A DNA stretch of 63,491 nt, counting the filler, from Octopus bimaculoides (taxonomy: Eukaryota): assembly GCF_001194135.2 (NCBI RefSeq). It is 5 parts of 4 records of this genome, joined end to end, with 100 filler letters (N's around TTAATTAATTAA, not from the genome) between each part and the next. Parts side by side here need not be neighbours in the genome. Positions count along the whole stretch, not along the records: positions 46,285 to 57,005 come from NC_068985.1; 4 more parts are not named here. One strand, given 5' to 3'. The position numbers were made by a program, and so were the translations under genes. Shown here one piece after another: positions 46,285 to 57,109 of the stretch (the stretch's first letter is position 1; each line of letters begins with the position of its first letter). Below the pieces are notes generated by a model. That model did no database searches. It saw only the letters and a program-made list of their open reading frames with translations, and had not been told where the DNA came from.

Positions 46285-46296
46285 AGTGGAATGCAG
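46285..46296 (-). CDS. First 12 bases of a further LDLa C-terminal-half exon (CIPL...), truncated by an assembly gap
   Basis: ccttataacag|C TGC ATT CCA CT then N. Same acceptor context and reading as the 71-bp exons; lies 973 bp from its paralog at 47269. Confidence 0.8.
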
Positions 46297-46639
46297 CTGT
46301 TATAAGGAAATTTGTTTATTTAGAAATCAACTTAAGCAATACATATGTATGTATTTTGATTTATTGCTTTTGAGAAGGAAATATTTTTTGTCTTGTTGAT
46401 GAAAGAAAATATTCATTCTAGTATGTGATCAACAGAGAGATTCATTGCATGAAAAACCAGACACACTTTCACATTAACAGTTAATATCGGTAACAGAAAG
46501 ATATGTTCAACTTTCATAAAATTATAACAAGATTTGATTTTCCTCCCCCTTCTTTATAACATACTATTGAGACATATTCATTGCTTATAAATATTAAGAT
46601 GATTAATAGGGTGAGAAAGAAAAAAATGAGTTATCTTAC

Positions 46640-46790
46640 GTCTTTGTGGCTGTACAGTACATTGCACCAACTTTACATTTCAAGGAAAGAGTTGTTGTAA
46701 CTGGAGCTTGTGTAGTTGTAACTGGAGCTTGTGTAGTTGTAACTGGAGCTTGTGTTGTTGTAACTGTAGCTTTTGTAGTTGTAACTATAT
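46640..46790 (-). CDS. Internal exon (151 bp, phase 1-2): mucin-like linker plus LDLa N-terminal half, (D)IVTTTKATVTTTQAPVTTTQAPVTTTQAPVTTTLSLKCKVGAMYCTATK(T)
   Basis: ctgtttcag|AT ATA GTT ACA ... TGT ACA GCC ACA AAG AC|gtaaga. Open frame, 21-bp repeats encoding VTTTQAP, phases match both neighbouring exons. The ORF track shows only its antisense reading (46646..46885 +). Confidence 0.88.
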
Positions 46791-47198
46791 CTGAAACAGT
46801 CAAACAAATCTTTTACCGTTTATCATTTACTTGCTTCAGTCATTTGACTAAATCCTTCAAGCAGTGCCCCAGAAAGCTTAAGTAGAGATGGGTAAGAGAT
46901 ATAAAATGCAAAGTTTATGCTTCAGCAATGCCTGAAAACTCGATCAGTCAATCACTGGGAATTTAATGAGAATGTGATACATCTCAGCTATAATTCATTA
47001 GTGATATTTACACATGCTTAAAGCTTGACCAAAACTGAGATGAAACTTTACTATCAACTATAGGTTACTTTCACAAATAATACAGAATAATTTATTTTAC
47101 ACTCTTACAGGATTGTGGCAAGCTTGTTATAATCATATTTACAAATTCAAATATAGCCACTTGCATTGAATTAAAATCATTTCAGTTATTATACATAC

Positions 47199-47269
47199 CA
47201 CAATCTTTCTCATCTTCTCCATCAGAGCAGTCATTTTCTCCATCACATTTCCAACTCAGTGAAATGCAG
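47199..47269 (-). CDS. Internal exon (71 bp, phase 2-1): LDLa C-terminal half [23 protein letters not shown]
   Basis: ttttaacag|C TGC ATT TCA CTG AGT TGG AAA TGT GAT GGA GAA AAT GAC TGC TCT GAT GGA GAA GAT GAG AAA GAT TGT G|gtatgt. The acidic Ca-binding motif (W..D..D..D..E) is intact. Confidence 0.92.
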
Positions 47270-47616
47270 CTGTTAAAATGAAATTTTGTTTATATAGAAA
47301 TCAACTTAAGCAATACATATGTATGTATTTTGATTTATTGCTTTTGAGAAGGAAATATTTTTTGTCTAATTGATGAAAGAAGATATTCATTCTAGTATGT
47401 GATCAACAGAAAAATTCATTGCACGAAAAACCAGCGATGCTTTCACAGTAACAGCTAATATAGGTAACAGAAAGATGGGTTCACCTGGTATAAAATTATA
47501 ACAAGATTTTCTTTTCCTATCACTAATTCGTAACACATATGATTGAAACATATTCATTGGTTATAAAAGTTAAGATGGTTAATAGCGTGAGAGTAAAAAA
47601 AAACAAGTTATCTTAC

Positions 47617-47683
47617 GCCTTTGATGCTGAACAATACATTTCGTTAAGTAGACAATTCAAGGAAACAGTTGTTGTAACTGGAG
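47617..47683 (-). CDS. Internal exon (67 bp, phase 1-2): short Thr linker plus N-terminal half of an LDLa module, (A)PVTTTVSLNCLLNEMYCSASK(A)
   Basis: ttttcag|CT CCA GTT ... TGT CTA CTT AAC GAA ATG TAT TGT TCA GCA TCA AAG GC|gtaaga. Supplies Cys1 and Cys2 and joins in frame to 47199-47269 to complete a six-Cys LDLa. Confidence 0.85.
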
Positions 47684-47699
47684 CTGAAAAAGTCAAACA

Positions 47700-48095
47700 A
47701 ATTTCTTACCTCTTATCTTTTACTTATTTCAGTCATTTGACTAAATCCTTCCAGCAGTGCCCCAGTCATGCTGGGGTAGTGTTTGAAGGGTTCAATCAAA
47801 TAAATTGGCTCCAATCCTTATTTTTAAAACCTCATACTAATTCTATCAGTTGATTTTGTTGTACTGCTAAATTACAGGGACATTAACAAACCAACACTGG
47901 TTGTCAAATATTGGTGGAGGGACAAACACAAAGACACATAAACACACATGTATATTATACACAATGAGCTTCCAACCATCAACTAAATCCACTCACAAGG
48001 CATTGGATGGGCTGGGGCTATAGTGGAAGGCACTTGCCGAAGGTGCCCTGTAGTGGGACTGAAGCGGAAACCATATGGCTGCAAAGCTTCTTGCA
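47700..48095 (-). mobile_element. Near full-length SINE family B inside the intron upstream of exon 47617-47683
   Basis: Head (revcomp of gtagtgggactgaagcggaaaccatatgg), CA-repeat linker, and tail ttacttatttcagtcatttgact. Confidence 0.7.
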
Positions 48096-48279
48096 GAAGA
48101 TATAAAAATGAAAAATTAGAAGGATTACTTTTGTAATTTTAGTTTAAATGGGCTTTCTATGAAGTGGCATTTATGTTTTGTGTCTCTAATGATAAAGTGT
48201 GTCATTCTGTAGTTACTGTTTCATGCACATGTCAGATTTCTCTCGTTTAAGTTAATTTCTCACTTCTGACAAGGACTGC

Positions 48280-48660
48280 ATATTATTAGAGTTGACTTCG
48301 CCTTTCATCCTTTCAGGGTCAATAAATTAAGTATCAGTGAAACACTGGAGTTGATACAGTTCTATATTTAAGAGATGAGGAATTATTTACATTATTTACA
48401 TTTGATGGATATTCGTCCTCATCTTGTTTGTTGTTAACGCAACGTTTCGGCTGATATACCCTCCAGCCTTTGTCAGGTGTTTTGGGGAAATTTCGAACCT
48501 GGGTTCTCATTCCTATCGATGTTACTATTATTATTAACAACAAACAAGATGAGGACGAATATCCGTCAAATGTAAATAATGTAAATACTGGAGTTGATGT
48601 AATCAACTTGTCCCCTTCCAACAAATTTCAGACCATGTGCCTTTAGTAGAAAGGATTATT
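48280..48660 (+). mobile_element. SINE family A interrupted by a 231-bp Penelope-type terminal fragment
   Basis: 12-bp duplication actggagttgat at 48344-48355 and 48587-48598; 54-bp inverted arms at 48384-48437 and 48534-48587. Confidence 0.75.
48436..48482 (-). ncRNA. Degenerate minimal hammerhead ribozyme (Penelope-like element terminus)
   Basis: Revcomp AACAC-CUGACAA-A-GGCUG-gaggguauau-CAGCC-GAAAC-GUU-GCGUU. Stem II is perfect and the AACGUU palindrome is present, but the core has G8>A. Confidence 0.6.
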
Positions 48661-49232
48661 AGAGTACTGTTTAGATATATGTTATGGTACACCAATTACA
48701 CACACTTGCATGCATATATATATATATANNNNNNNNNNNNNNNNNNNNNNNNNNNNNNNNNNNNNNNNNNNNNNNNNNNNNNNNNNNNNNNNNNNNNNNN
48801 NNNNNNNNNNNNNNNNNNNNNNNNNNNNNNNNNNNNNNNNNNNNNNNNNNNNNNNNNNNNNNNNNNNNNNNNNNNNNNNNNNNNNNNNNNNNNNNNNNNN
48901 NNNNNNNNNNNNNNNNNNNNNNNNNNNNNNNNNNNNNNNNNNNNNNNNNNNNNNNNNNNNNNNNNNNNNNNNNNNNNNNNNNNNNNNNNNNNNNNNNNNN
49001 NNNNNNNNNNNNNNNNNNNNNNNNNNNNNNNNNNNNNNNNNNNNNNNNNNNNNNNNNNNNNNNNNNNNNNNNNNNNNNNNNNNNNNNNNNNNNNNNNNNN
49101 NNNNNNNNNNNNNNNNNNNNNNNNNNNNNNNNNNNNNNNNNNNNNNNNNNNNNNNNNNNNNNNNNNNNNNNNNNNNNNNNNNNNNNNNNNNNNNNNNNNN
49201 NNNNNNNNNNNNNNNNNNNNNNNNNATATATA

Positions 49233-49901
49233 TACGTGGAGAAGTCAAAAGTTATCTGCACTTTTGCCATAACATATCTTTATTATTGTCACAATGCCTT
49301 CTGCTCATATGTGCTTATAGTTGGTACTATTGTAATCATGTGACTGAAGTTTGACTCTGATCATGCCATTTTTCTTTCTGGCTTTATAGTGTGAGCATGG
49401 CTGCTCCACTAATAATGTGCACCAAAGAAGAACAAAGAGCAGTGATCCAAGAGATGGTAATGGTGATCTGATTCACCATTACCATCTCTCGAACTTGCTG
49501 AATATTCTTGTCAGTGGTGGAGGTTGACAGGCATCCTGCTCCCTCTTCATGTGTCAGGCTTATCCAGCCACTTTAAACTCCACTCACTCCACTCACGCAC
49601 TTCTACATGATAGTACACTGTCCCTATATTGTGCTAAAAGCCTCTGATGAATTTCAGAAACAGACACACCTTCCAACCAGAAAAATTAAATCACTACTCT
49701 TTGCTCTTCTTTGGTGCACATTGCTTGTAGAATGGCTATGCTTACACTGTAAAGCCAGAAAGATAGCGCAATCAGGCTCAAACTTCAATCATGTGATCAC
49801 AATAGTACCAACTATAAGCCTGGATGTGCAGAAGGCAGTGTGACAACAATAAAGACAAGTTATTGTGAAAGTGTGGATAATTTTTGGCTTCCCCTCATGT
49901 A
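49233..49901 (-). mobile_element. Mariner-derived element with two convergent 5' ends (~215-bp inverted arms)
   Basis: Left tacgtggagaagtcaaaagttatctgcac...atgtgcaccaaagaagaacaaagagcagtgat; right arm is the reverse complement (tacatgaggggaagccaaaaattatccacac...MCTKEEQRVVI). The middle encodes the transposase HTH region on the minus strand. Confidence 0.88.
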
Positions 49902-49904
49902 TAT

Positions 49905-50330
49905 AAAGCGCTACATTCACACACATTTTGACTTGTGATTTCTCCAAACTTCCCACACATTCTGTACAATGGCAATTTGATCATTTTGTTGATGTGGAAT
50001 TTTACATAGTTAGTTCTTAATGCTTGCTCTTGAGCAGCACAAACAAGAGCTTCCACCAACTTCTTTCAAATCTCCCTTACTCATTCAGTCCCTTGTCATG
50101 TGTTTGTCTATCTTTCCAAAATTAGAGTCTTTATCCATATCTATTTGGAACTGTCCATGCATCACCTTGTCTTTCAACTCTGCAGCCTTCTTTTCAGCTT
50201 CATTTGTTTTGAACTCTTCAGTGTTCAAGGTCAATCTGTATGAAGCAGTTTTATTTTGATAACTGGCATGAATTGTTATGATGCAGGTAACTCTTTCCCA
50301 ATTTTCCAATAATGTCAGCTAACTTTTTCT
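49905..50330 (-). mobile_element. Dong/R4-like LINE fragment
   Basis: KDKVMHGQFQ...KGDLK...YRMCGKFGE (HGQF motif and zinc-knuckle start). Confidence 0.65.
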
Positions 50331-50841
50331 CAGTAACAGTTTTAATCTTTTTGCTCTCCAGTGCCATTGACAGTCCACCTATATACATCAAGCTATTCCT
50401 GATCCCAGAGGAAAGAAAGATAGAAATGATACCAGTGAAATTTGAACTCAGAACATTAATAAAAAGACAACTAAATATCAACATGACTATGAATTCAATG
50501 ACTATGGAAGAAAAACAGATAAGGTAAAAATTTTTTTAATATATTAGTTATGGAGATTTCACTAAAGTGGATTTAATCAGTAATATTTTATTTAACCCTG
50601 TGTGAAATGTATGAACATGTAAAGAGTATGACTTTATTCTCAATCACCTTCTATAGTTCTTGAGGCAGTAATATTTAGTATTCAGAATTGGTTGTCCTTT
50701 GGAACTTCCCAACAATTATGAACTGCTTGACACTGCAGAATTTGTGGAAGTACTGTAGAAATGATTTAACTGCCAACATAAATACCAAAGTTTTACATTA
50801 TTTACATTTGACGGATATTTGTCCTCATGCTGTTTGTTGTT

Positions 50842-50888
50842 AACACAACGTTTTGGCTGATATACCCTCCAGCCTTCATGAGGTGTCT
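50842..50888 (-). ncRNA. Second degenerate minimal hammerhead ribozyme copy
   Basis: Revcomp GACAC-CUCAUGA-A-GGCUG-gaggguauau-CAGCC-AAAAC-GUU-GUGUU. Stem I (5 bp) and stem II are intact; the core has G5>C and G12>A. Confidence 0.55.
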
Positions 50889-50959
50889 TGGAGAAATTTC
50901 AAACCTGGGTTCTCATTCCTAAGGCATTTTTCGATGTTGTTGTCGTTGTTATTATTATC

Positions 50960-51052
50960 ATTAATATTATTATTCAGGTCACTGCCTGGAATCGAACTTG
51001 CAATCTTGGGGTTAGTAGCCCATGCTCTTAACCACAACACCATATGCCTGTG
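50960..51052 (-). mobile_element. tRNA-derived SINE head (family E) abutting the Penelope-type terminus
   Basis: Revcomp ggcatatggtgttgtggttaagagcatgggctactaaccccaagattgcaagttcgattccaggcagtgacctgaataataat. Confidence 0.65.
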
Positions 51053-51639
51053 GGCAATTATGGAGTGAATTTTAGGGCTTATATTTTTCTATCCTTCCCG
51101 AATACCGATTCCCATAGTGTTTTCCGTACACCTAGGGCAGAGAAACTCGTTGTATGCATTCCCAGNNNNNNNNNNNNNNNNNNNNNNNNNNNNNNNNNNN
51201 NNNNNNNNNNNNNNNNNNNNNNNNNNNNNNNNNNNNNNNNNNNNNNNNNNNNNNNNNNNNNNNNNTATATTTACTGATCTTGTCAAATTTTTTCGCCGCT
51301 ATATTATGATCACAGAGAATACTCATGTCAATTAATTAACACGTCTTCTTTGTCTGATCTTTGATAATAATATCTTATTATTATTATTATTATAATTATT
51401 ATTATTATTATCATCATCTTCTTTCAATTCTGTTTCCCTTTCTTGCTGAGTGTCTTCCTGACACCTAGGGCAGAGAAACATACTGTATACATTGATAGGC
51501 CATTAAAATTAACACACCAGATTGTTTATTTACAAAGTCATGTGACAGAGAAAAAGGGGAAGAAAGACAGAGAGAAAAAGGAAAAAAAAGAAATAAAAAG
51601 TAAACAAAAAATAAAGGGGAAAAAGGGAAAGAAAATTCA

Positions 51640-52800
51640 CAGCAACAATGCTCTTCTCAATACATGTGATGTACCAGTTGAGACAAACTTTTGCAATTCC
51701 TGCATAAATGGTAAGCCAGGGATCATTCCTAAATAATTTTCAGTTCCTTTTTTGATCATTACAAGTGCTCCTACAATCATTGGTATTGTAACTGTCTTGA
51801 GATGCCACATCTTTTCGATTTCAATCAGCAAATCTTTATATTTTCTAAGCTTAGCAAATTCTTTTGTTGAGATATTATGGTCACAGGGTATGCTCATGTC
51901 TATCAATAAACAGACTTTATTGTTTTGGTCTTTCACAACAATATCTGGTTTATTTGCTTTGATGGTTCAGTCTGTATGTACTGGAAAATCCCAAAGAATC
52001 ATTAGATTTTCTCCCTCAGTTACAGCCTCAGGGTGATGCTTGTACCATTTGTCAGCTGCTTTGATTTTATAATCCTGACACATTATCCAATGTAGATATT
52101 GGCCCACTATGTCATGTCTTGATTTGTACTCTACAGGTGCTAAAACCTTACACCCAGAGATTAGCTGGTCCACTGCTTCAAGTTCTGGGTCAATAGGCTC
52201 TGATCTTGAGCAGCCAAGATAAAGCCTTAACTCTCTGCTTTTAGCCCTGAGTTCCGTAGCCACAGATGAGTGTGCTTCTGGTTAACATCAGTTTGTTTGT
52301 TATGAGCCACATATTTGCCATGCAGCAGTTTTTGTTCCTACTTAACAGCCAATTGTTCAAACGCATTTTGCTTTGCTATTGATTTCATCTTTGCAACTAC
52401 AGTTGTGGCATTTCCCTCGTGCTGTTCAACCTGAGTGTTATGCATAAACTCACTTGAAAATTTTTTGCTCTCCTTCATAACAGAATGAAGCTCCTTACAT
52501 CTTTCAGGGTTTTCAACGACCTTTAGCATCCGGTCGTTAGATATTTCAAGATATTTTGTCGGTCGGTCCAATTGTGGTAGTTTTGTAAGAGATTTCAAAT
52601 TGGATCGTGCATTTAACTCAGATTTTAGGACTGCTCGAACTCTCCTGTAACATTCCTTCCTAGTCTTCTCTTTCATACTTGCATGCTGAATGCCAGAGCC
52701 CTCATTTATTCTGAGGTATTTGTAAGTTTGTTCCTGCTCAAGTTCTTTTATGACTGTGTCAGCATTCAACACCACTGAATGTGAGGTCTTCAATTTCCTT
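51640..52800 (-). mobile_element. Dong/R4-like LINE, RT C-terminus to end
   Basis: YKYLRINEG...KECYRRVRAVLKSELNA; LAPVEYKSRHDIVGQYLHW; ILWDFPVHTD; CLLIDMSIPCDHNISTKEFAKLRKYKDLLIEIEKMW...HVLRRALLL*. Confidence 0.88.
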
Positions 52801-52917
52801 TTCTAGAAAGTGGCCTTGGCACATTTATCAAGACCAGATATGTGTAAATATATATGTGTGTGTGTACAAGTGAATGTGTATGTGTGAGTGAATGTGTGTG
52901 TGTACGTGTGTACATGC

Positions 52918-52968
<51 letters not shown>

Positions 52969-54184
52969 TGTGTGGAGGGTAGTGTTTGTAGCTTCTTGTC
53001 TTGGCATCATGTTGTAGATATATTGATAAATGAGTGTCATCATCATATAAGCAGTGTCCTTCATTTACAATCTGCCATGAAAACATGTCTCGCCAAGAAA
53101 AATTAAGACCTTGCTTGGAAACAGTTGAGGGGTGGCAACTATAAAGAGCATCTGGTTGTAGAAATTTGTCACAAAAAATTTCTCATGACCCAGACTATAA
53201 GAAGAAAGAGGACATTAAAACAATGATGGTGATATGGATGATGACATGCATTTATATATTTTGTGCTTTTAATTTATCTGATAGTCATAATGTTTTTAAT
53301 ATGTATTAATAGGACATTTTACCTCACCCCTCATTTTGATTTGTGTACATCACTAAATTCCTTGTAATCCCTTTTGTAACATGTTGTATTGAATGGATGG
53401 GTCAGTCTTGCAAGTAGAGGGGCAAAATTAGTATTATTATTCTTGATGGAATCATTAGCAGACTAGACAAAATGGTTTGCAGTTTAGTTATGATAAAATC
53501 ATCCCAAGGTCGATTTCAACTTTTCTGGGCTAATGAAATAAAGCACTGGGGTCAATGCAATCAACTGTGTATCACCCCCATCTCTCTTTAAAAAGAAAAT
53601 TCTGATAATGTACTTATGTTAGAAACAATTATTATTTGATAATAATCAGATAAGTATTTTGAGGCTCTGGTATATTTCATTTAGAAATAGATTTTGAAGT
53701 TATATTTTTTTGTTTGTTTCAGTCTTCAGAGTCCAACCATGCTAGAGTATCACCTTGAAGGGTTTAGCCTAACAACTTGACCCCTGTACTTATTCTAAGT
53801 CTGGTAGTTAATCCATAGGTCTCTTTTGCTAAACTGCTAAGTTACAGAGAATTNNNNNNNNNNNNNNNNNNNNNNNNNNNNNNNNNNNNNNNNNNNNNNN
53901 NNNNNNNNNNNNNNNNNNNNNNNNNNNNNNNNNNNNNNNNNNNNNNNNNNNNNNNNNNNNNNNNNNNNNNNNNNNNNNNNNNNNNNNNNNNNNNNNNNNN
54001 NNNNNNNNNNNNNNNNNNNNNNNNNNNNNNNNNNNNNNNNNNNNNNNNNNNNNNNNNNNNNNNNNNNNNNNNNNNNNNNNNNNNNNNNNNNNNNNNNNNN
54101 NNNNNNNNNNNNNNNNNNNNNNNNNNNNNNNNNNNNNNNNNNNNNNNNNNNNNNNNNNNNNNNNNNNNNNNNNNNNNNNNNNNN

Positions 54185-55170
54185 TGGAAGTCTGATGGTG
54201 CAAGGTCAGGAGAGTAGGGGGTAAAGAGGAAGTATTTCATAGATACAGGAGAGTGCTTTCATTTGGACAACATGAGCATTGTGACCTGGGGTGTAGTTTT
54301 GGAGGAGGGGACTCCTTTGGTCAGCATGCCACTCCTCTTTGCTTCGATGGCATCCTGCAATTTCTGCAGCAGGAAAGCATAATATGCCCTGTTAATTGTG
54401 GTGCCATTTGCCAGGAAATCCATCATCACTATTCTGCACTGGTCCCAAAAGACTGTGAGCATTAACTTGCCTGCTGAGGGTTGGATGCAAGTGTTCTTTG
54501 GAGGTGGTGAGTTATCATGTTTCCATTGCTTTGACTGGATTTTAGTCCCAGGATAATAGTGATGGACCCATGTTTCATCCTCTGAGGTAAGTCTGCTGAA
54601 AAAGTCCTCCTCATTTTCTTGGCACATTGCCAAAAGAGCCTGGGAACAATTGACTTGTTCCTGCTTCTGAAAAGGTGTGAGCATTCAGGGAATCCATCAA
54701 GCAGACAACTTCTACATGTACAAATGGTCTGGAATGATTTTTCCATGGATCCTACACATATCTTCACTTCTTGAGCTGGTTGCTGAATAGTTATACAGCG
54801 ATCCTCTAAAATGGCAGCTTTCACTTTATGGATGGTGTTGTCATCATTGGCAGAATGTGGTCATCTAGGAATAGGAGCACTGATGTCCAACCACATTTGA
54901 ACTGGTGATGTCAATGCTTGACTACATCGTATGATGGTGCATCATCACCATATACTTCTTTCATCTCATCGAAAATCTCTTTTGGTGTACAACCTTTCAA
55001 TTATAAGAATCTGATCACTGATCTGTATTCAACTGCCACCATTATAACACCTTAGTCCACTTTAGCAGCCATAAAAGACAAACGAATACTAGTGTAAAGC
55101 TGCAAATTAAAATGTGACATGTAGAGACATGTATAATTATTTCTGTACAAGTTCCATTTCCTGCAATACA
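54185..55170 (-). mobile_element. Mariner transposon, frameshifted transposase (D34D family)
   Basis: MVAVEYRSVIRF..., WVP-like motif then EDETWVHHY, KLMLTVFWD, PYSPDLAPSDF; both ends run into N gaps. Confidence 0.92.
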
Positions 55171-56099
55171 NNNNNNNNNNNNNNNNNNNNNNNNNNNNNN
55201 NNNNNNNNNNNNNNNNNNNNNNNNNNNNNNNNNNNNNNNNNNNNNNNNNNNNNNNNNNNNNNNNNNNNNNNNNNNNNNNNNNNNNNNNNNNNNNNNNNNN
55301 NNNNNNNNNNNNNNNNNNNNNNNNNNNNNNNNNNNNNNNNNNNNNNNNNNNNNNNNNNNNNNNNNNNNNNNNNNNNNNNNNNNNNNNNNNNNNNNNNNNN
55401 NNNNNNNNNNNNNNNNNNNNNNNNNNNNNNNNNNNNNNNNNNNNNNNNNNNNNNNNNNNNNNNNNNNNNNNNNNNNNNNNNNNNNNNNNNNNNNNNNNNN
55501 NNNNNNNNNNNNNNNNNNNNNNNNNNNNNNNNNNNNNNNNNNNNNNNNNNNNNNNNNNNNNNNNNNNNNNNNNNNNNNNNNNNNNNNNNNNNNNNNNNNN
55601 NNNNNNNNNNNNNNGCTCATAGACAAACTGATTATTTTGAAACTAAATCACCAAAAGTGAGTAAAAAATCACATCACTGAAATAAAACCAAAATATGTGA
55701 GTTGCTGACCCAAGATCTACAATCGTATGTATACCATCCCAGGAACTCAAATTTAGACAAATATGGTAATTAGCATTTCCTTAGCACATAATTTTATTTT
55801 ATTCAGGTTTATTTATTTAGTGAGAGAATAAAAATGTACCTTAAATATATGAAAAACATATTTTTTATAAACTTCAATAGTGACCCCTAGAACATAAAAG
55901 TACATTTCTAAAGCCATTTGTTTAGCTCCCAAATGTTTCTGCTTTTCTCTGCCATAATACTAAATGCTTTTGTTTATGCATCCACTTGTTAAATAACTGA
56001 AATCAATTTCTTTCATGATGCCTGTAACTATGATAAATTTTCTCTGATCATATTTTTCTACAATAAATGTCACTTTAAATTTTATATGAATGCACTTAC

Positions 56100-56170
56100 C
56101 ACAACCCTTTTCATCTTCTCCATCAGGGCAGTCATTTTCTCCATCACATTTCCAAGAAATTGGGATGCAT
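56100..56170 (-). CDS. Internal exon (71 bp, phase 2-1) encoding the C-terminal half of an LDL-receptor class A module: [23 protein letters not shown]
   Basis: Reverse complement reads ttataatag|A TGC ATC CCA ATT TCT TGG AAA TGT GAT GGA GAA AAT GAC TGC CCT GAT GGA GAA GAT GAA AAG GGT TGT G|gtaagt. Canonical splice sites; matches LDLa consensus C-I-x3-W-x-C-D-G-x2-D-C-x-D-G-x-D-E-x2-C. Paralogous to exon 47199-47269. Confidence 0.9.
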
Positions 56171-57109
56171 CTATTATAATATTTTTACATGTATATATTA
56201 GAAATTAACTTTAACAATGCACATTTTCTTTTGTATTTAGTGAAAGGACTTGTAAATTTAAAACATTTGTGAATTTTCAGGTCCTCCAAGAATGGTGATG
56301 TTAATAATGTATTTGTACAAGTTGAACTTTTGGTGCCAGTATTAAAACTGTGTGCAGATAGGAAATTGTGAATAACTGCATTTTAGTGAATAGCTTGAGA
56401 GATGTTAAATACAGTAGATACAATGAATGAAAAAGAAGCAGGTGCATATATAAGGATTTGTTGAAAATGGTACTCATCTCGTTTTCTGAGGAGTAGTAGC
56501 TGTATTAGGGGCAGAAGTAAATAAAGGAAGAGCGGAAACATAATATTTATAACTTGTGATTACAGCATGATGGTGGTGGTGGTGGTGGTTAATTTTTACT
56601 AATTAGCAGATGATCTTTTTCATTGGATGCAGCCTAAGATGTTGAGAGTGTAGCAGCAACAATGTCCCAAATCAGTGAACAATATTCTGCTGTAAGTTAC
56701 ATCTGAGCTTTGTTATGAGTCAAAACCCTTTCACAGTGGAGGTATTTTGTTGCTTCAGATGAGTATCCCAGTCTTTGAGACACAGTTTTGTTAACATTAT
56801 AGATTAATAATTTGCAATGACTGAGATATTTAGTGATGTGTCATACATGAATACAGAAAGGTGTTACATGAGATGACATTTTTCCCTTTTTGTGATATGT
56901 ATAAGGATTATGTTCTGGTATAGTTGAAGGAGACTGAGCCATCATGTCTCTACTGATGCATTTGCAGTTTCTGTTTCTTAAAATAATATAAGCACGTGTG
57001 TCTATNNNNNNNNNNNNNNNNNNNNNNNNNNNNNNNNNNNNNNNNNNNNTTAATTAATTAANNNNNNNNNNNNNNNNNNNNNNNNNNNNNNNNNNNNNNN
57101 NNNNNATAT

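Follow-up and report, generated by a model that had tools for sequence, protein, structure and literature searches.

Architecture of the Locus

The DNA described here is a window of 63,491 nucleotides from Octopus bimaculoides (assembly GCF_001194135.2), in which five genomic parts are joined end to end; all positions below count along that whole stretch. The piece analyzed, window positions 46285–57005 (from NC_068985.1), is AT-rich eukaryotic DNA with four runs of N. At 46285–47770 of this piece, an earlier note had flagged a gene growing by duplication of an exon pair, in which the two exons encode the N- and C-terminal halves of a low-density lipoprotein (LDL) receptor class A (LA) module and the first of them also carries a Thr-rich spacer.

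The gene lies on the minus strand of the window. Four exons, all with AG acceptors and GT donors, are present in the flagged interval and form two units, B followed by A, each with an N-half exon (N) and a C-half exon (C). The labels x and y refer to two further units, described in the next section.

47617–47683, minus strand: NB, 67 bp, spacer and N-half exon of unit B (APVTTTVSLNCLLNEMYCSASKA), with one VTTT unit followed by VSLNCLLNEMYCSASK(A)
47270–47616, minus strand: NB-CB intron, 347 nt, phase 2
47199–47269, minus strand: CB, 71 bp, exon for the C-half of unit B, in which the Trp and the acidic Ca2+ cage are encoded
46791–47198, minus strand: CB-NA intron, 408 nt, phase 1, composed of 329 nt that also follow exon Cy and 82 nt that also precede NB, Nx, and Ny
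46640–46790, minus strand: NA, 151 bp, spacer and N-half exon of unit A (DIVTTTKATVTTTQAPVTTTQAPVTTTQAPVTTTLSLKCKVGAMYCTATKT), with five VTTT units followed by LSLKCKVGAMYCTATK(T)
46694–46786, minus strand: 21-bp coding minisatellite of the VTTTQAP type, in frame inside NA, two adjacent copies being identical
46297–46639, minus strand: NA-CA intron, 343 nt, phase 2, just before Cys3; 96% identical to its counterpart in unit y and 87.5% identical to that in unit B
46285–46296, minus strand: CA, C-half exon of unit A, of which the first 12 nt (c tgc att cca ct = CIPL...) precede the edge of the piece

Each N exon encodes its Thr-rich spacer and then Cys1-x6-Cys2-x5, after which a phase-2 intron intervenes; the C exon contributes Cys3–Cys6, the Trp, and the acidic Ca2+-cage motif. 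The intron phases run 1/2/1, and the summed lengths of the exon pairs are 138, 222, 159, and 180 bp. Since both outer boundaries of a pair are in phase 1, duplication of the whole pair preserves the reading frame.

The spliced product matches the Pfam family Ldl_recept_a (PF00057) in two stretches (71.9 bits against a cut-off of 24.1), and phmmer against the PDB returns the LA modules of LRP2, VLDLR, LDLR, and CD320. An LA module is recognized by six cysteines with a spacing like C1-x6-C2-x5-C3-x6-C4-x5-C5-x8-C6, with an aromatic residue preceding C2 and an Ile following C3. In units B, x, and y and in the visible part of A, this takes the form C(x6)C(x5)C-I-x4-W-x-C-DGxNDC-xDGEDExxC, and the Trp and acidic Ca2+-cage motif is found as WKCDGENDC[SP]DGEDE in every C exon. 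Judged by this pattern, the modules are bona fide LA domains, and they are expected to bind Ca2+ and, through their C-half, basic patches on ligands.

The last ~90 nt of the N-to-C introns (46297–46390 and 47270–47365) are almost invariant across the four units, with identical runs of 73–87 nt between B, A, and y, and this intron end is still alignable upstream of an older C exon, C3 (at 56171–56240). It may be a constrained splicing element.

Assembly Context and Extent of the Array

Through the annotated protein of the gene, we reached a 34-kb stretch of O. bimaculoides chromosome CM046605.1 (GCA_001194135.2), here termed L001. The reverse complement of the piece is 100% identical, contig by contig, to L001:635–11355. 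Its left edge at 46285 (L001:11355/11356) is the start of a 6,048-N scaffold gap and its right edge is a 634-N gap; another gap of the locus, of 9,651 N, lies 3′ of the last exon of the array. At 46285, the contig includes just 12 nt of a conserved C exon before the 6,048 N of the public chromosome begin, which looks like a repeat-induced assembly break, possibly hiding further units.

The public assembly was built from short reads and later put into chromosome-scale scaffolds; it is gap-rich, and its annotations are fragmented (PMC10925132). In an assembly of this kind, tandem units could represent diverged haplotypes or a mis-joined repeat. The N runs on both sides of the locus, the contig end inside a conserved exon, which is typical of a repeat-induced break, and the order B-A ... 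x-y, which loosely parallels itself, are all compatible with such an artifact. However, NB, CB, NA, and CA lie together on one uninterrupted contig of 2,444 bp. Moreover, the divergence between B and A is 12% in the introns and 28% in the core of the N exon, their spacers differ in length by 84 bp, and the divergence between B and x is 14%; these values are far above plausible allelic divergence. A and y also differ in upstream context, where A has a short junction and y a repeat-like sequence. An artifact is thus extremely unlikely, and the tandem units proposed in the earlier note hold up as separate copies rather than mis-assembled alleles.

Beyond the 6,048-N gap, the public chromosome carries two more complete units, and a diverged C-half exon lies upstream of NB within the piece.

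Unit x, public chromosome, beyond the gap: N exon of 85 bp (VIVTTTQAPVTTFSLDCPVNEIYCSASKA) and a C exon
Unit y, public chromosome, beyond the gap: N exon of 109 bp (DIVTTTKATVTTTKALVTTTLSLDCPLDEMYCTATKT) and a C exon
56100–56170, minus strand: C3, a diverged older C-half LA exon, in phase with NB, which lies 8.4 kb downstream

C3 can be aligned with the other units only over the exon itself and ~70 nt of the upstream intron (~78–80%), and transposon debris separates it from NB. Scans of the 34-kb locus with tblastn and regular expressions found no other LA half-exons and no N-half for C3. The last module is followed by one more exon, whose product, DYTLDNFEKQDTNFIIDAFPKEVYVRIPLET, is assigned to no family, and then by the 9,651-N gap. 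Although units A and B of the earlier note are real, the array is thus larger than the two units described there: it runs into the 6,048-N gap, and the gene is predicted to have at least five LA modules.

Two side observations concern individual exons. An open reading frame encoding MFPLFLYLLLPLIQLLLLRKRDE at 56474–56541 (minus strand), 303 nt upstream of C3 and in phase with it, has a mean hydropathy of 2.33 over 18 residues and a weak donor (GA/GTACCA, with the slash at the splice site); it may be a first exon that encodes a signal peptide, in which case the first “module” would consist of a C-half alone. In unit x (L001:19747–19820), the ancestral acceptor aacAG/c has been lost and now reads agtaac, with tatAG 3 nt upstream in its place; the shifted acceptor adds an Asn before Cys3 (SKANC) and increases the Cys2–Cys3 spacing from 5 to 6.

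The annotated protein of the gene, XP_052823984.1 (209 residues, “very low-density lipoprotein receptor”), begins at a Met inside NB and passes from NA directly to Cx, leaving out Nx. A second model, UniParc UPI0006952FA1 (204 residues), joins CB to Nx, skips NA, and reads through the last donor site. Both models (L001:10001–24208) are fragmentary and mis-thread the array across the assembly gap. Pfam finds only PF00057 in either of them, and no EGF, YWTD, transmembrane, or NPxY parts are visible in these models or in the locus, which runs into the 9,651-N gap at its 3′ side. The gene therefore cannot be shown to be a VLDLR/LDLR-type receptor, and its name rests on domain similarity only. A first protein search, against a set of 5.8 billion proteins, returned no cephalopod relative beyond the two O. 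bimaculoides models; the next match was a Toxocara LA protein (98 bits).

A Short Duplication Nested in an Older Array

Comparison of the piece with itself reveals a direct repeat between 46285–46872 and 47258–47765 at a constant offset of 973–977 nt, in blocks of 29–254 nt at 82–90% identity (88% in the longest block, 254 nt). Such a repeat is far beyond chance. Three features lie in the introns around it.

46870–46872, minus strand: duplication junction, ...ctacttaagctttCTG/gggcactgcttgaagg... (...aagctttCTG/gggcactgc..., with the slash at the junction); CTG is present in both parental flanks
47684–47765, minus strand: 82-nt intron segment directly upstream of NB, common to all four units; proximal end of the ~0.9-kb duplicated segment
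47766–48187, minus strand: repeat-like sequence upstream of NB, also upstream of Nx (83%) and Ny (82%) and absent upstream of NA

The repeat family ends at 46872/47765, matching the position of the junction. The part to the left of the junction has a different continuation after Cy and Cx (tttcagcttc...). The part to the right is preceded by ...catgaCTG at NB, Nx, and Ny, so that CTG constitutes a 3-nt microhomology. The junction in the CB-NA intron is the signature of a head-to-tail duplication of a ~0.9-kb segment, which in the B copy measures 893 bp (46873–47765). The exons, the repeat offset, and this junction bear out the proposal that a frame-preserving exon-pair unit, here ~0.9–1.0 kb, was duplicated head to tail.

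The repeat-like sequence at 47766–48187 belongs to an older, longer unit. The alignment of B with x extends for 1,326 nt and that of x with y for 1,257 nt, in each case including ~300–520 nt of the repeat-like sequence upstream of the N exon, and the short duplication is nested inside the older array of longer units. Growth of the array in at least two nested layers is shown by these alignments. The older layer, of units of at least 1.3 kb that share the same repeat-like sequence upstream of the N exon, produced B, x, and y. The younger is the ~0.9–1.0-kb head-to-tail duplication with its junction in the CB-NA intron, which yielded the short 408-nt intron. Microhomology-mediated or unequal recombination probably copied the units.

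Variation of the Spacer Minisatellite

NA exceeds NB by 84 bp (151 − 67), which is four 21-bp VTTTxAx units, as had been read from the two exon lengths, and Tandem Repeats Finder confirms the repeat at 46694–46786 (period 21, 4.4 copies, 94% matches, 0% indels, score 165). NB has one spacer unit, NA five, Nx two, and Ny three. The first unit is identical in A and y (VTTTKAT), but it is followed in A by three QAP-type units, two of them identical in DNA, and in y by one KAL-type unit, and these sister spacers thus differ by 42 bp through different unit types. The spacer of x has one QAP unit and a terminal unit that is one codon shorter; B has none. The copy number of the spacer therefore changed independently in each unit, as the earlier note had supposed, and in both A and y it did so while their introns diverged by 4%. 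The number of 21-bp repeats would have been altered by slippage during replication or by unequal exchange.

The spacers would be expected to form stalks that carry O-glycans and vary in length. Short Thr-containing linkers between the LA repeats of vertebrate receptors are known sites of O-glycosylation, with a single site each (PMC11745429).

Relatedness of the Units

In a four-unit alignment, intron divergence is 0.040 for A-y, 0.122 for A-B, 0.109 for A-x, 0.139 for B-x, 0.109 for B-y, and 0.102 for x-y, and 15 informative sites group A with y, compared with 2 and 4 for the alternative groupings. By this measure, unit A is closest to y and not to its neighbor B. A direct and recent copying of A from B was considered and rejected on the same values (4% intron divergence to y vs 12% to B), and since the closest relative of A is y, the A/B comparison does not date a single duplication event. 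The introns of A and B are alike, as the earlier note had remarked, but at 87.8% identity they are not nearly identical, and a divergence of 12% is not recent. Under assumed, unmeasured neutral rates of 1–5 × 10^−9 per site per year, 12% would correspond to ~13–67 million years and the A/y divergence to 4–21 million years.

The affinities of B change along the unit. CB and its downstream intron are closest to y (6.5% divergence vs 17–18% to x), and the B-y divergence falls from 15–18% to 1–7%; the ratio of B-y to B-x differences shifts between the upstream and downstream parts (Fisher p = 0.012). The array is thus a mosaic, the structure to be expected where the duplications were followed by gene conversion or unequal crossing-over.

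Divergence of the N-Half Exons

The earlier note had reported that the N-half exons differ more than the introns around them. Between A and B, the N-half core differs at 14 of 50 positions (0.28) and the flanking introns at 52 of 425 (0.122; Fisher one-sided p = 0.004), and the 50-nt core is more divergent than the flanking introns in all six unit pairs (0.18–0.32 vs 0.04–0.14; one-sided Fisher p 0.0002–0.10; odds ratios 1.7–5.2 over the two forms of the comparison). The excess persists with the conserved last 100 nt of the intron removed, the ranges then being 0.18–0.32 and 0.04–0.16 (p 0.0007–0.15), and the outcome that would have refuted the earlier note on this point is not seen. The related claim that the N-half is more diverged than the C-half is correct when units x and y of the public chromosome are included (N core 0.22–0.26 vs C exon 0.056–0.127), but it cannot be read from A and B, of which the C-half overlap is the 12 nt of CA, with one difference in 12.

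The synonymous sites are elevated as well. Nei-Gojobori ratios of nonsynonymous to synonymous differences per site (pN/pS) in the N core are 0.23–0.93 in five pairs and 1.43 in A-y, the latter from 1.5 synonymous differences, and pN exceeds pS significantly in no pair (p = 0.59 for A-y). Pooled over both exons, pS is 0.41–0.45 compared with 0.09–0.16 in the introns, a 2.6- to 4.5-fold excess (p = 0.0001–0.005) measured over ~22 synonymous sites. Base composition was considered as the cause of the fast synonymous change and rejected: by inspection of the sequence, third positions of the C exon have a GC content of ~30%, which is also that of the introns. Read literally, these figures would make the exons older than their surrounding introns. 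The C exon, with a pN/pS of 0.07–0.38, is under clear purifying selection.

The youngest pair, A-y, shows a further peculiarity. Of its 29 differences, nine are concentrated in a 24-nt stretch around Cys1 (scan P < 5e-5; 0 of 20,000 random placements match), where A reads K-C-KVGA and y reads D-C-PLDE, with five of six residues replaced. These changes map mostly to the A lineage and take the charge of the loop from −3 to +2. The cluster could be an adaptive burst in A or, just as well, a short tract converted from a unit that the gap conceals.

Positive or diversifying selection on the Cys1–Cys2 loop, as proposed in the earlier note, would give the modules different binding properties. It would account for the excess of the N core over the flanking introns in six of six pairs, for the cluster of replacements around Cys1, and for an A/y pN of 0.20 that exceeds the intron value of 0.04 (p = 0.0003). 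However, synonymous and third-position changes are also elevated, which selection on amino acids alone does not predict, and because synonymous sites are as elevated as nonsynonymous ones, diversifying selection is not shown; the pN/pS values, below 1 in five pairs and not significant in the sixth, lead to the same result. Nor does what is known of LA modules support the ligand-facing role supposed for the N-half: in canonical LA binding, lysines of the ligand are held at the Ca2+ site by the acidic cluster and its neighboring Trp (PMC5452030), and both are encoded by the C-half exon. We consider this form of selection possible but unlikely.

A short gene-conversion patch from an unseen paralogous N exon, located in the 6,048-N gap or elsewhere, could instead have overwritten the unit A loop. 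In favor of this, the changes lie close together and include codons altered at several nucleotides (AAA vs GAC, AAA vs CCC), with one difference in the other 26 nt of the core, the array is a mosaic elsewhere too, and the gap may conceal more of it. Against this stand the lack of a donor in the available 34 kb, the occurrence of KCKVGAMYC words in no other protein of the 5.8-billion-protein search, and the length of the tract, which at ~24–60 nt would be unusually short. A conversion patch of this kind is a doubtful explanation of the A loop.

Other Elements in the Piece

Between NB and C3, the piece contains transposon debris and other elements. An element resembling a miniature inverted-repeat transposable element lies at 48384–48587, with 54-nt terminal inverted repeats that are 98% complementary, and a 130-nt copy of one of its halves is found 2.4 kb off at 50792–50921 (91% identity). 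A long foldback at 49227–49905 is made of two inverted-repeat pairs next to each other, whose arms measure 149 and 74 nt and are 79–84% complementary, around a center of ~240 nt. A degenerate mariner-type transposase remnant occupies 54259–54684 on the minus strand (Pfam Transposase_1, E = 2.6e-17) among broken frames, and a Pfam search with three retroelement-like open reading frames at 51637–52793 (minus strand) gave no match. By eye, 50975–51045 resembles the reverse complement of the head of a tRNA-derived short interspersed nuclear element (...ggaatcgaac...); ARAGORN called no tRNA, this interval included. The only Rfam hit, mir-297 at an imperfect (TG)n microsatellite (52853–52974), was discarded as an artifact, its score of 35.8 bits being below the gathering score of 90.

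Discussion

The locus is probably the middle of an O. bimaculoides gene that combines LA modules with Thr-rich, mucin-like spacers in an exon-pair array, which grew in layers and whose introns were homogenized later. The affinity of A to y, that of CB and its downstream intron also to y, and the excess of exon-core over intron divergence are together best explained by homogenization of the introns. In this process, gene conversion or unequal crossing-over would have acted on the introns after the duplications, leaving the exon cores distinct; in addition, the six codons around Cys1 of A would have undergone either a burst of changes or conversion over a short patch.

Several points weigh against this history. 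The order of the duplication events cannot be reconstructed, because the 6,048-N gap hides the rest of A and possibly more units. The protein search gave no cephalopod orthologue outside O. bimaculoides, which makes cross-species dating and gene trees impossible. Exon usage and the 5′ and 3′ ends of the gene are predictions from sequence. The constrained last ~100 nt of the intron lowers the intron average, and without it three of the six N-core contrasts are marginal or nonsignificant (p = 0.03–0.15). Finally, the synonymous samples are tiny (~22 sites), and the six unit pairs are not independent of one another.

One could go further and regard the array as a device for diversification, in which N exons bear a fast-changing Cys1–Cys2 loop and a mucin spacer of variable length and are kept different by selection, conversion homogenizes the introns, and N and C exons are spliced combinatorially. 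With phase 2 at the end of all N exons and at the beginning of all C exons, splicing of any N exon to any downstream C exon could occur, and the two public gene models, which thread the array differently (NA to Cx; CB to Nx), can be cited for such a reading. If it were true, hybrid LA modules and a combinatorial repertoire would arise from one gene. We find this reading very improbable.

In itself, the event is ordinary tandem exon duplication, by which genes of this kind commonly enlarge, and the gene already has an annotation, although a fragmentary one. What the locus offers is a clean, breakpoint-resolved case of a modular extracellular protein becoming longer by frame-neutral duplication of exon pairs together with slippage in a minisatellite of its coding sequence. 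A single feature is of wider interest, the divergence of the exon cores beyond that of the introns, with the burst around Cys1 in the youngest copy. If this is confirmed in gap-free assemblies and in sister species, the gene would be an invertebrate case in which introns are homogenized and exon divergence is kept or accelerated within a single gene.

Comparison with Known Systems

The array grew by the same kind of mechanism as the kringle IV type 2 (KIV-2) repeat of human LPA, in that a two-exon, disulfide-rich module is repeated as exon pair plus introns, head to tail and in frame, within one gene. The kringle modules of LPA are also joined by glycosylated linkers rich in Ser, Thr, and Pro. 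The KIV-2 unit spans two exons in 5.5 kb (PMC10584998), whereas the octopus unit, whose copy number is read from one assembly, measures ~1 kb, encodes an LA module instead of a kringle, and occurs in copies that are 4–14% diverged, compared with nearly identical ones in LPA.

Sudhof et al. (1985) reportedly described the LDLR-family genes as exon-shuffled mosaics in which LA repeats are bounded by phase-1 introns, and Patthy's 1-1 module rule is said to place phase 1 on both sides of a module. The octopus LA boundaries are likewise in phase 1 on both sides, which permits duplication or skipping without a frameshift, and growth of the array agrees with such classical exon shuffling; unlike the LDLR-family modules, each octopus module is also split by a phase-2 intron just before Cys3.

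Between consecutive LA modules, the octopus gene has Thr-bearing linkers, as do the receptors modified by GalNAc-T11 at the C6-XXXT-C1 motif (PMC11745429). Those linkers are ~4–5 residues long and contain one Thr, which occupies position −1 relative to Cys1. The octopus spacers, known from sequence alone, are 9–37 residues long and are built of tandem VTTTxAx heptads, and their Thr residues lie at least 5 residues before Cys1. With the Pro/Thr/Ser repeats of mucins and other coding minisatellites, they share an in-frame, Thr/Pro-rich short repeat of variable number in a single exon. They differ from these in that the arrays comprise 1–5 units and lie between folded modules, and a large central mucin domain is absent.

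The pattern of divergence has a parallel in the L and M opsins of primates, in which gene conversion homogenizes the introns and selection keeps key exons apart (PMC3213168). In the octopus array, too, the exons of the paralogous units diverge more than the introns, synonymous sites included. The opsin case is built on population and multi-species data and on tracts detected with GENECONV, whereas the octopus comparison draws on four units of one genome.

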